64,000 bases of DNA, taken from positions 20,708,001 through 20,772,000 of the forward strand of contig OZ281500.1 in NCBI GenBank assembly GCA_965637545.1. Direction: 5' to 3'. Positions 17,119 through 26,292 of this stretch are shown one piece after another. The notes beneath the pieces are model-generated. The model ran no database searches and was not told where the DNA came from. It was given only the letters and a program-made list of their open reading frames with translations. Position numbers and translations under genes: made by a program. The first letter of the stretch is position 1. The number at the start of each line of letters is the position of its first letter. The stretch comes from Phallusia mammillata (taxonomy: Eukaryota).

Positions 17119-18711
17119 CAGACACACACGTCTGATTTTTTACCACAAAAATACATATAGTTAAATATATATTAAACCAAATCATTTAAGCATACGGTCA
17201 AGTCAAGTCACAATTTTATTAGCATTTTCACTTTATCCAATTGTCATTGATGAATATAGTTGGCTAAATGATGATCAATCAAAAGTACACGGAAATTATG
17301 TGAAAAGTTTGGTGTCGTGTCGTGCAACAACCGACCCAATCAAAAAGGGAGTATCCCCTGTTTGGTTTGTCCGAAATAAAAACAATACACATGTATAAAT
17401 TTTTTATTATTTATTTAGTAAAACCGTTTGTAAGTTCTGAAATACAAAGTTCTAATTTACTATATAATTTTGCACAACAATTCATCTCATTTAGGACTTT
17501 TTTCGGCGATCAAGATTACGAAAAACGGAACACTGCCTGACGTCCTGGTTGGACAAACGGACATGGCTTATGCGTCGAACCAACCATACTGTTTACCTAC
17601 CGACTTCTTCTGTGAACGCTGGTTCAATCTATTGAAATCTTAATACAGTAATTCGTATTTCAATATCTCCCCGTATATCCGATACTGCTAGATATCTTCT
17701 CGATACCATTAGACATGCACCCCCTTTTATAAGCATAGCCACAAACGTCTTTTCATTTTTCTTTTTTTTTGAAAAACTTGAAAATTGGTCTATAAACTGT
17801 AAATACATACACTCAATGGCTGCAAGTTTGTTGCACTTTATTCTGCCTTTACCGTGGGCGTTTTCTTAAATGTAAATTGCAAGCCTGATTTGTGCATTCT
17901 GTAGTTATTCGTGAAACCGTAAACGAAATTTTTATTGTAAACTCAATGCCACACAAAAACCAGGGCAATAGCAAAAAAAGCTTTCTGGGTTTCCCGCAGT
18001 CGACGAAACAAGGCTTGGCACAAAACAAGACAGGTGACAGTGCTTAAAGGTTTGAGATACTACATTAAAGTGACGGTTATTTGGTGGTGCCAAAACTTTG
18101 GTTCTTCATGAAAGGCACTCGACAGGTCTAAGACCAGCGTTTGTTTTTGCGGAACAAGTTACGTTTCAACACAAAAACTAAACAAACTCAACACCAATTC
18201 AACACATCTACAGAAAACTAACAAACACAAGAATGCTTACGTTAAGGGATTTGAAGGTATTAGGGGCGGCCAACAATCAAACATAGCATAGCTTCATGTT
18301 TAGGAAGAAATCAAATCATTACGGGTGCATCTGTGTGCAACCAGCATGTTGCGTTGCATAGCATTGCATCAACTCATAATCTCTGCTCTAGCCCATTCCA
18401 AATTCCGACACACAACCACTGTGGCCAAAAAGGGGTACAGAAGTATCAGGCATACACACAGGCACATACATATAGGATTTGTGCCACTGCCCAGTTGATG
18501 CAAGCGACCGTTACATTAAAAATACAAATGTTTTAATATCCGGTAACAAACAGAACACCAAGCAAAAACGGGTCTATATATCCCGTCAGACACGCAATGG
18601 TTCGGACAAGAAAGCTAAAGAACTGTTAGACCATGTCCAAAGTGTCCAATTAAAGAAGGTTGTAGTTTTTTTGTTTGTTTTTTTGATAGTGCACAAAGCT
18701 GAAATACGGAT

Positions 18712-20893
18712 TCAAATTTCCATGTCGAACTGGTCCTCCTCTTTGTGGGAATCTGCATCGAGAAAAAAACAGGACATTGATATGAATTTTCAAGAGAAAT
18801 GAGGTGAATGGAACATATGCGAACGCCGACACGTATCAGAAGAAGCAAGGCACAGAGAATGTTATAAGGAACAGAAGTCAACACATGCAGAATACATAAG
18901 CCAAGCCATGCAAATTTAGAACTCCAAAGCAGCACACTAACAATGCACGGTAAAATATATATTTTCTAAATGCTCAACTGTGCTTAACCAAACCACGCCA
19001 TGTGCACTTAAACTGACACTGTACTGGTGCTGTGTAAGTAGTGAAGTTGTTGTGCTTGTGCTTTATCTTACTATATGACATTCGAATTTTCATCAACAGC
19101 CTTTAGTTGGTGGTTGTCATGGTGCAGTTGGCCATACATTGGCATGTCAGATGGCTCAACGCAGTCACTGAATTGTCCAGTATGTTGGGCATTATTTCCT
19201 TGCTTGGACATGAACAACTTCTGCATTGGCTTACAAAGGTTCCCAGGTATATTTGACTGGGACATTCCTCTGCCTCTGCCTCTATATGCTTGTGTATTGT
19301 GCACATTCCTGGTAGCTGTTGGAACGAGGTGTGGGGCATTGACAATGGTCTGCGATACAGCTTGTGAAATGACTTGATTAAACTTTGCCTGGCGCCATGC
19401 ATTTAACTGACTGGTAGGGTATGTTGGATTGGGTGTTTGAATAGACCCTGGTTGAGCCAATTGCCATAATCCATCACCAGAACATTGATTGTTATTTGCA
19501 TCATAGTGGTCTGGCATGGGAGGTAGTGGCGGTGGCATGTGCATGGCATTTATAACTGAATTCGCCACATTAAGACAAGTCTTCTCAACAATTGCACTAT
19601 TTTGCTGCATGAAGTTTCGCTGTCTGTATTGTTGCAAAGGACCTTTTGCCACTGGAAAAGCATCAAATCCTGCAGCTAGCGGAGAGAGGATAGGTGGGGG
19701 TGGCAAAGGAGGTGGTGGTGATCGGAGTTGCCAAAAATAACCTGCACACTAACTGGGTTGACTATCTCTCAGCGTAAACTATGATATAATTTCATGCAGC
19801 AGGATACTAAATAGGTATAAATATATAATTAGTAACATACAAAATCAAACAAGCATGCTTGCATGTTAACAAACTGCTAGCATGAAACAACAACTTGGTC
19901 AATATTGGATTAGAGTATGTGATGCAATGATTACATCATACATAGTGAGTCAGTATGCTTTTTGATAAATACCATGCAAATTAAATTTTAAACTAATTTA
20001 TGCTTCAACTTATTTTGTGAAGAGCAATATTTTATGCATATATAGATCCCATCAAATTTAATATTTGATAGTTACGAAAAACACACAACACAGAGCCCAA
20101 TGCCCCTTGACAATTTTTAGATATGATTGACATCTCAATAATGATAACCCAAGAAGTGCTTGTAAAACATGACTCTTATTGGTTTTGCAGGTGCTTTTTT
20201 AGAGATATAAATCACAGTAAATCATATTTCAGAACCTTTCAAAAAGTTTCTGAGTGTGCAATTACTTTTTACAGGTCTGTTTTGCAATGGGTTGAGCACC
20301 CTGATCAGTACTGTTTTAATGTTTTGTGACAAGCATATCTTTTAAACCCTGCACATTTCACAAAACTAATTTGTGCATTTTTACAAAACCCTTGCTTACA
20401 TTAAAAATTGATCAATGTATTTTCAAAAAAGCAAATTTTCTCCCAATTGTATGCAAAATCACCCACCTCCGTTCTCCTTGGGTATTTCTTTTTCCTCTTC
20501 AATTCTGCCAATAACCTTTGATGGTGATTTGTCTGGGCTGGTTACGCCGGGAATATCAGGTAGATTGCTTGGTGGAGTATTGGACATTGGTGATGCTCGG
20601 CACTTCAGCAGAAATGACCGGTCGTAAATAATTCTTGTGCCTATAACAAAAGATATGCATGAAACAATGTTAAGTTTTAGCAGTATTATAACAGTCATAT
20701 TTGTCTACCTCCAGGAGTAGTTGAAAACAAAGTGCCACCTGGAGTTGTTCCATAGTCGTGGGGCAGCTCAGACATATGGTTCAACTGCACATAATTGAAG
20801 TTGTGTTAGAAAATGCATAAATGAATACACACATTGTTAAGGTACCTTGATTCGTCGAATGGGAATCGATTGGGGTATGGTACCAGTACTCAT
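18712..20893 (-). CDS. EIF4EBP: Eukaryotic translation initiation factor 4E-binding protein, 112 aa
   Basis: Exons 20893-20846, 20784-20709, 20640-20467, 18752-18712. [81 protein letters not shown]: both TP priming sites, YxxxxL-phi eIF4E-binding motif, C-terminal TOS motif FDMEI. Confidence 0.96.
19072..19741 (-). CDS. Candidate alternative exon of 4E-BP encoding a ~223-aa Pro/Gln/Asn-rich tail
   Basis: The long open frame begins just after a stop, right at a GCAG acceptor in the phase (1) left by exon 20640-20467, and ends TA|GTAAGA at a donor-like site; read-on (TAG) and splicing to 18752 (TA+A) both terminate there. Confidence 0.6.
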
Positions 20894-22188
20894 TTTGATA
20901 CAGTGCTAAGTGTTTTACCTAGTGAGAATTAGTTGGAACTAAACATAAAACAGAAAACATTGCAAGATCTTTCACATCATTTTTGTGCATTGTCCAATTG
21001 TCATTTTTTTAAACATTTTTTTTTAACTTTTCATGCTACAAATACAAAGCAATTTACACACTTTAGTGTATGTATAAAAGACAGATATTGTTGTTAAGTA
21101 GCATTGATCTAAAAAACCAACAAAACTTTCACATTCCTGGTAAAAAACTAACAATATATGTTCCAAAATTTAAGGGTCATATACAAGTTAGCCGACATCA
21201 AGAATTTGAATAATAGCAATGGCATTACACTTTTGTAATGTAGTTTGTCTATATTAAAGCCTGCAAGATTCCTGTTATTCTTCAAATGTGCTACGAGCAT
21301 GTCTTTATTTAATTTAACCATTAAGCTGACTCAATCACAAAAATGTAAATTTGCCAGGGTTTATTTATGTTTTAGTTATTAGTGGTTTTGGTATAGAAAT
21401 TAATTTTGTATCAATATTAACAGATACAGCTTAACATAAATATGCATAAATTATTGTCATACTCAATGCAAATGTAGTCTTTTTTTTCTTTAGTGCAATT
21501 ACTACATAAGATAAAAAACTATTCAAACAAACAAAAACCGCAAAAATGTTACACACTAAAACATCAGTCACCATTGCAAGTGCATTATCGAAACAGATTG
21601 TAAAGTAAACGCGCCTAAAGAAAAAAACTTTTTGTCGCAATCACCATCATGGCGCAACCTTGCTGTGCAAATCTATTTACGTTCCGCTTCACTTGCTATA
21701 CGGGCCAGACATTGTTAACCACGTGATGTTAGCTTTAACAGCAAGATTGGAAACAACAAACTTTAGCGAGTCAGCAAACTTTGCGAAGGTGGCACAAACG
21801 CCACTTCACCAAAAATTTGCCTCCTAAATACACGAATAAATAAAAAATATTGTAAATCAACTCAACTGAACTGCGCCACTTAAACAGTTTTTATGTGGTA
21901 GGCTATGTTCCGAAACTATTTTATCTAGGGATGGACTGCTTGCACTTTGAACATCTTGAAACTGTTCAAAACGTTTTTTTGCAGTCGCTACTTAAAGAGC
22001 TGGACCATAAACTTCAACTTGTACTGGCGACTTTTTTCTCCATGACCTGACATCTGAGTAATGAGTTCAATCTTATGGTTGCGGCAAAAGTTAAAGACAG
22101 CCTGTAGCCATCCTGCCATCCTGCCATCCTGCAGACAAGATGTTTTACTGCTTTATAAGTCATAACTGTTTGTAGCCTAGCTGCGCAG

Positions 22189-22273
22189 TTACGCAATCAA
22201 TTGATTTACTTTCGAAAGAGGGGCACATTTCCGTTATGACGCAATTTTATTCAAAGCCCTATTTATACGCAAT
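22189..22273 (-). promoter_or_regulatory. Candidate 4E-BP promoter: TATA box with clustered C/EBP-ATF-like sites
   Basis: TATAAATA on - at 22260-22267; TTACGCAAT 22189-22197, ATGACGCAAT 22236-22245, TACGCAAT 22266-22273 (read on +). Confidence 0.5.
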
Positions 22274-22420
22274 CGAGGTGAAATCGTACTGGCGAATTCT
22301 AACAGCTTTATGACTTTCGTAATGTTTTATTTAATGATCTTTATGAAACGTCGTCAGCGGTGAGCCCATCAAGTTTAATAGGGACGAGTACGAACCCGAA
22401 TATTGTAAACTCAGTTGGCC

Positions 22421-23057: not shown

Positions 23058-26292
<3,235 letters not shown>

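Follow-up and report, generated by a model that had tools for sequence, protein, structure and literature searches.

A conserved cassette exon in the ascidian 4E-BP gene encodes a predicted long isoform without the TOS motif

Introduction

4E-BP, the textbook case of a brake on cap-dependent translation gated by mTORC1, is usually regarded as a small protein of approximately 115 residues, coupled to raptor by a TOS motif at its C terminus. In the initial annotation of the DNA studied here, a 64,000-nt stretch of the Phallusia mammillata genome to which we refer as the window, a long stop-free frame was noted inside the last intron of a 4E-BP gene, and it was proposed that inclusion of this frame in the mRNA would exchange the TOS motif for a long low-complexity tail and yield an mTORC1-resistant repressor. 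The locus raises the question of whether the frame is an exon of the 4E-BP gene at all, and, if it is, what a 4E-BP deprived of its raptor handle might be doing in an ascidian.

Results

The 4E-BP gene of the window lies on the minus strand, appears to be single-copy, and consists of four constitutive exons, with the start codon (ATG, 20893-20891) in the first of them.

20846 to 20938, minus strand: exon 1 (from the sequence; joint 20846>20784 in three runs)
20709 to 20784, minus strand: exon 2, with two TTPGG priming-site repeats (joints 20784/20846 and 20640/20709)
20467 to 20640, minus strand: exon 3, with YDRSFLL, the SP/TP sites and IPGVTSP, ending in phase 1 (..KENG + G)
17996 to 18752, minus strand: last exon (from the sequence and the contigs; contigs end near 17996)

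Joined to one another, these exons encode a protein of about 113 aa that carries two TTPGG repeats, YDRSFLL, RASP/NTPP, IPGVTSP and a C-terminal FDMEI. The latter is the TOS motif (18729-18715) and is followed by the stop codon of the short isoform (18714-18712), both within the last exon. Exon 3 alone matches the Pfam family PF05456 (eIF_4EBP) with an E value of 1.6e-16 (60.6 bits versus a cutoff of 24). The canonical YDRSFLL and the non-canonical IPGVT element (as DIPGVTSP) are both predicted from this exon, which at the level of sequence places the product in the 4E-BP family, and putative equivalents of the mTORC1 phospho-sites T37, T46, S65 and T70 can be recognized as GTTPGGT, STTPGGT, RASP and NTPP, respectively.

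Two further observations concern the 5' side of the gene. The contig of run X4 has a loose 5' end of 22 nt at 20940, the reverse complement of which ends ..GATTCTATTTGAATA (window 20938-20962, minus strand); it resembles the 16-nt spliced leader of ascidians (..ATTCTATTTGAATA..), and the 4E-BP mRNA thus appears, probably, to be trans-spliced to the spliced leader at the acceptor ..tttatgtttag/ttccaact near 20939/20938. Just upstream of 4E-BP, the minus strand between 23058 and 26130 holds long open reading frames with C2H2 zinc-finger signatures (HTGEKPY linkers, e.g. 24235-24516), which probably belong to a separate zinc-finger gene.

The frame under study occupies part of the 1714-nt last intron, and its borders are as follows.

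19072 to 19741, minus strand: cassette exon of 670 nt encoding a 223-residue tail (joints 20467>19741 and 19072>18752 in four runs; match to the protein record CAB3263062.1; dN/dS 0.074)
19066 to 19073, minus strand: TA/GTAAGA at the cassette end, a stop codon overlapping the 5' splice site (from the sequence)

The open frame begins directly past a CAG acceptor (19744-19742), 19741 being the first exon base, and an in-frame TAG is found three codons upstream of it. In the phase set by exon 3 it continues for 223 codons and ends ...ATA TA/GTAAGA at 19072; in the unspliced RNA the stop would be the TAG at 19073-19071, and a further in-frame TAA is contained within the donor. With a cassette length of 1 mod 3, the joint to 18752 brings TA and A together as TAA and leaves the TOS codons untranslated, the last exon becoming wholly 3' UTR after its first base. 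The predicted long product is of 99 + 223 = 322 aa, keeps YDRSFLL together with the TP/SP sites, loses FDMEI, and would also keep an N-terminal ..SIPI.. motif. Each of the elements on which the initial annotation was built, namely the 670-nt stop-free frame, its phase-compatible acceptor, the GTAAGA donor, the TAA made on splicing, and a product of ~322 aa that retains YDRSFLL and the TP sites while the TOS exon goes untranslated, is found in the sequence at the coordinates that it gave, as is the weak polypyrimidine tract that it had reported at the acceptor (TCAACCCAGTTAGTGTGCAG/G). With its stop codon split across the last exon junction, the mRNA should by the usual rule escape nonsense-mediated decay, as had also been anticipated. 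Folding of the RNA around the cassette donor revealed no structure (z-score 0.01).

The GC content of the cassette is 0.45-0.47 versus approximately 0.31 in the intron, and the longest stop-free run observed is 225 codons, versus a mean of 78 and a maximum of 191 among 2000 shuffles of the intron. The conservation and purifying selection described below are stronger evidence than the length of the open frame that the cassette exceeds chance.

Evidence for splicing was taken from the spliced contigs of four runs, belonging to four separate studies, aligned to positions 17400-22400; such contigs report the presence of an isoform and do not allow isoforms to be ranked. The RNA label of the runs is itself only guessed, and it is the precise removal of five introns, together with the spliced-leader-like 5' end in X4, that identifies the contigs as mRNA assemblies. 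The joints 20467>19741 and 19072>18752, all GT..AG, are present in the contigs of all four runs, and in X1 a single contig of 1737 nt runs through exons 1, 2 and 3, the cassette and the TOS exon into the 3' UTR as far as 17996. The skipping joint 20467>18752, likewise GT..AG, is present in one run (X13), and the inclusion form is the one assembled in three of the four, a count of contigs which carries no measure of abundance. Across the four runs there are no contigs that cover the flanking intron and none that start inside it. The 670-nt frame is a true cassette exon of the 4E-BP gene, and both mRNAs exist. The splicing of the cassette on both sides into 4E-BP mRNA, as the initial annotation had supposed, is therefore borne out at both of the junctions that it named and in four studies; of the outcomes that it held to be fatal, an absence of inclusion reads is contradicted by these joints, and a separate nested transcript by the 1737-nt contig, which links the cassette with exons 1-3 on one side and with the TOS exon on the other.

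The same arrangement is found well beyond this genome. At six genomic loci, the window included (the others being L001, L005, L006, L008 and L009), the tail frame ends in a stop at a GTAAG donor, which the stop either overlaps or directly precedes, and all of them have the frame on the downstream side of the YDRSFLL exon apart from L005, a 1.1-kb contig that stops short of that exon. Identity to the tail is approximately 80% for L005 and 45% for L001-L004; L006 and L007 are from Clavelina, and L008 and L009 from other sources. The frame opens at an acceptor in all four loci inspected (the window, L005, L001 and L006). A stop precedes it by three codons in L001, L005 and the window and by eight codons in Clavelina, and the exon has a length of 1 mod 3 in every case with two definable borders, namely these same four. 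Splicing would add four residues before the stop in L001 and two in Clavelina. In all five sequences in which a downstream TOS exon was found (the window, L001, L006, L010 and, by read-through, P0017) that exon is out of frame. L010 is an environmental contig of 1.5 kb in which 4E-BP and the tail are present without introns and an out-of-frame ..SQFEMEM followed by a stop is situated 46 nt past the stop of the tail; intronless and with an out-of-frame FEMEM exon, it is a spliced inclusion mRNA from a more distant organism. P0017, also environmental and a Gln-rich pelagic variant, lacks a stop where the cassette ends and continues in the TOS exon, in its +1 frame (..ESKVSTKTT..), which indicates that closure of the frame varies between lineages while loss of the TOS is constant. 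The NCBI model of the Clavelina gene ends ..NFVL, an unspliced reading of the donor, and in some species the cassette may accordingly serve as a terminal exon. Conservation of the frame in related species, which the initial annotation had proposed as a check, thus holds at six genomic loci and in one spliced environmental mRNA.

Between the cassette of the window and that of the congener-like L005, dN/dS is 0.074, with 30, 24 and 111 differences at codon positions 1, 2 and 3, whereas the upstream intron reaches an aligned identity of only 56% in the same comparison. The motifs of the tail are kept down to 33% identity across suborders. From these comparisons we conclude that strong purifying selection acts on the tail, which is common to distant ascidians.

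The long isoform is already present in public protein databases. A word-index search returned Phallusia mammillata CAB3263062.1 (UniRef100_A0A6F9DI14), a protein of 325 aa, named 'uncharacterized protein LOC100187288', which is 98% identical to the tail and carries PF05456. It reads ..KENG and then the tail, ends ..DENSNVI, and is the predicted isoform: its residues 100-325 match the cassette tail except for an indel of 3 aa (VSC) and one substitution. The indel corresponds to 9 nt, in frame, at 19526, where the window has PPP-LPP, and both the X4 contig and CAB3263062.1 have PPPVSCLPP; the presence of the insertion in X4 as well makes this an in-frame allelic polymorphism, and the close relative L005 has a longer version at this site (PPMVNCLPP). 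A profile search returned Clavelina lepadiformis XP_076803001.1 (CAK8684543.1), a protein of 319 aa with PF05456 and the tail, whose overall identity with the Phallusia protein is 51%. The Phallusia record is the same protein as the long isoform and the Clavelina record its ortholog, yet both are labelled only 'uncharacterized protein' and neither, as seen, mentions a 4E-BP splice form without the TOS. Our search of the literature returned nothing that describes a long TOS-less 4E-BP splice form, whether for an ascidian, Phallusia or Ciona or for any 4E-BP; a 4E-BP paper that mentions Ciona aligns the short protein only (PMC2659438). The sequence is, in short, already public but uncharacterized, and the isoform is so far restricted to tunicate-like sequences.

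The tail is richest in Pro (12%), Gln (10%) and Asn (9.5%) and contains RGRGRG. Its description in the initial annotation as a long low-complexity tail is only partly accurate, in that the Pro/Gln/Asn-rich composition and the RGRGRG are present, but low entropy is confined to the first ~30 residues, a proline-rich stretch that is not conserved outside Phallusia, and the rest carries six conserved blocks at a dN/dS of 0.07. These blocks, taken from an alignment of 10 sequences (A3, down to 22% identity), are conserved from Phallusia to Clavelina and beyond.

Block 1: PLQQYRxR[NS][FL]phi..Q...[YF]EK
Block 2: SGDGxW
Block 3: PTSQLxxWRQxKxNQ
Block 4: YRGRGR
Block 5: PxNLCxxxEKLF
Block 6: PxYGQ

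DENSN is a further motif of the cassette tail. AlphaFold2 predicts no globular fold, the mean pLDDT being 44 with 4 aligned sequences and 51 with 10 (pTM 0.17-0.18), values too low to allow a comparison of folds; with 10 sequences, helices are predicted at a pLDDT of ~70 on the two best-conserved blocks, 1 and 3 (residues 34-65 and 111-132), and the rest is predicted to be disordered. Fourteen relatives include block 1, and in 13 of them it fits a relaxed YxxxxL-phi pattern (YRQRNFM in Phallusia, YRQRSLV in Clavelina). Searches of Pfam and NCBIfam assigned the tail to no family, nor was there a transposon match; its profile gave only chance-level matches among PDB sequences (E of 0.25 or worse), a feature search of the ESM Atlas gave no usable match, and an exhaustive profile search of 1.84 billion representatives returned only the tail orthologs and one chance-like match to a proline-rich protein of 1053 aa, with no stand-alone donor gene. 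A reading of the blocks as PAM2, made by eye, was rejected on the grounds that the spacing does not fit, and a reading as TOS on the grounds that no TOS-like motif (F-x-phi-[DE]-phi) exists in any tail examined; other linear motifs, likewise considered by eye, were also rejected. The long isoform is a product of the 4E-BP gene that is without this one feature of the family.

The introns that flank the cassette hold two kinds of short motif that may be of regulatory interest.

19920 to 19938, neither strand assigned: palindromic pair of TGATGYAAT (C/EBP-ATF, ATF4-type) in the intron, approximately 180 nt upstream of the cassette

TGATGYAAT occurs five times in the window, where 2.2 are expected, and three of these are in the 4E-BP gene, the third being at 18363-18371 in the 3' UTR. 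The same inverted pair is found in L005 (173-191), and two copies are found in the same intron of Clavelina (L006 4937-4945 and 5243-5251). Drosophila 4E-BP is induced by ATF4 via intronic sites (PMC5223598), and by analogy the pair may be a conserved stress enhancer; we regard it as a candidate transcriptional enhancer. Separately, the Rbfox-type motif GCATG occurs at 18888 and 18911 in the downstream intron and at 19797, 19858 and 19977 in the upstream intron, i.e. 5 in 1044 nt near the cassette versus 0.9 per kb across the window. L001 has 6 in 818 nt, L005 has 4 in 369 nt upstream, and TGCATG is found on both sides of the Clavelina exon. Compared singly with shuffled sequence, the L005 upstream intron (5/500 shuffles) and the L001 downstream intron (8/500) are significant; the window's own segments and the L001 upstream intron are not.

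Discussion

The explanation that we judge best, and consider reasonably probable, is that the conserved cassette yields an eIF4E-binding long form which is without a TOS, docks poorly on raptor, and acts through partners bound by its tail as a tethered or localized repressor. Skipping of the cassette would give the classical 4E-BP of ~113 aa that ends in the raptor-docking FDMEI. Inclusion would shift the frame by +1 and bring translation to a stop exactly on the last exon junction, and the resulting protein is expected still to bind eIF4E through YDRSFLL/IPGVT. Raptor recruits 4E-BPs via the TOS motif at their C terminus (PMC5974435). The long form may accordingly dock poorly on raptor, such that mTORC1 would release it less readily, while the predicted helices and the YRGRGR box of the tail could bind other partners; the outcome, by analogy, would be a repressor tethered or localized in the manner of Cup and 4E-T and not purely nutrient-gated. 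Phosphorylation at the equivalents of Thr37/46 depends less on the TOS than does that of the later sites, and for this reason to call the long form 'resistant' to mTORC1, as was initially done, may be too strong. Its partitioning into RNP granules and a role in oocytes or germ plasm, both raised in the initial annotation, are likewise hypotheses.

It is conceivable, although in our view unlikely, that mTORC1 controls the long form much as it does the short one, by way of the N-terminal RAIP-like motif or other docking, and that the tail changes only its localization, stability or partners. All four phospho-site equivalents and the N-terminal ..SIPI.. would indeed be retained. Against this, F-x-phi-[DE]-phi is absent from every tail examined, and the phase of the exon removes the TOS in each of the five sequences in which a TOS exon was found, which has the look of a selected feature.

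A second proposal, to which we give rather less credence, is that PLQQYRxR[NS][FL]phi is a second helix of the eIF4E-binding type, so that the long form would be bivalent, able to bring two proteins of the eIF4E family together by bridging or clustering them, or else to fold back upon itself. The block is the best-conserved part of A3 and is predicted to be helical (pLDDT ~70), the relaxed YxxxxL-phi fit extends to all but one of the 14 relatives with the block, and Clavelina, P0006 and P0013 have L at the key position. Most members, however, have F and not L there, the tyrosine is replaced by F in P0007 and P0014, and YxxxxL-phi patterns are common by chance. Similarly doubtful, to our minds, is the more elaborate idea that ascidians make a Cup/4E-T-like, raptor-independent and bivalent brake on maternal mRNAs, tethered to granules or to the cortex, in which the PLQQYRxRxF-phi helix would be the second eIF4E-family site and YRGRGR a methyl-arginine/Tudor or RNA handle. 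Were this bivalent reading true, one gene would supply both a nutrient-gated brake and a tethered brake for maternal mRNAs.

The remaining alternatives deny the tail any role in a 4E-BP protein. That the included form is only non-productive splicing noise, or else a 'poison' event that serves regulation, its tail having no function, would accord with the weak pyrimidine tract of the acceptor, but is strongly disfavored and very improbable in view of the dN/dS of 0.07, the motifs conserved to 33% identity across suborders, a stop at the last junction that should not trigger nonsense-mediated decay, and an inclusion form assembled in three of four runs. That the frame is what remains of a transposon, or a separate gene nested in the intron, as an internal Met and the stand-alone ORF of 182-240 aa given by the gene callers of related contigs might suggest, is scarcely credible when every contig links the ORF with the flanking 4E-BP exons and none begins within the intron, the frame opens at an acceptor only three codons (window, L005, L001) or eight codons (Clavelina) past a stop, no Pfam or transposon match is found, and the position is single and syntenic in every species examined. 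The contigs, the selection and the conservation together effectively exclude both.

Returning to the TOS-less long form with a partner-binding tail, this chordate gene would have a second protein in which the eIF4E clamp is kept, the raptor handle is dropped and a conserved, putatively partner-binding tail is gained. As such it offers a natural experiment on what a TOS-independent 4E-BP does, a candidate link between 4E-BP and the localized control of maternal mRNA in ascidian eggs, and six conserved motifs without explanation that are to be matched to partners.

Set beside the canonical metazoan 4E-BPs (human 4E-BP1-3, Drosophila Thor and sea-urchin 4E-BP, all PF05456), the first 99 residues of the Phallusia protein are those of a textbook 4E-BP, and the gene also gives rise to the normal short protein with FDMEI; in contrast to them, the long isoform is without the TOS and has a conserved tail of 223 aa with no known domain. 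Cup, 4E-T/EIF4ENIF1 and Mextli combine a YxxxxL-phi module with a long, mostly disordered region in which short motifs recruit mRNP factors, and they operate independently of TOS and raptor. We propose that the Phallusia long form may share this working logic with Drosophila Cup, 4E-T/EIF4ENIF1 and Mextli. Pfam, NCBIfam, PDB sequences, the Atlas and the exhaustive profile search gave no sequence or domain homology of the tail to repressors of the Cup/4E-T type, and the likeness would therefore be one of logic. Unlike Cup, 4E-T and Mextli, the proposed adaptor of Phallusia is an alternatively spliced product of the canonical 4E-BP gene.
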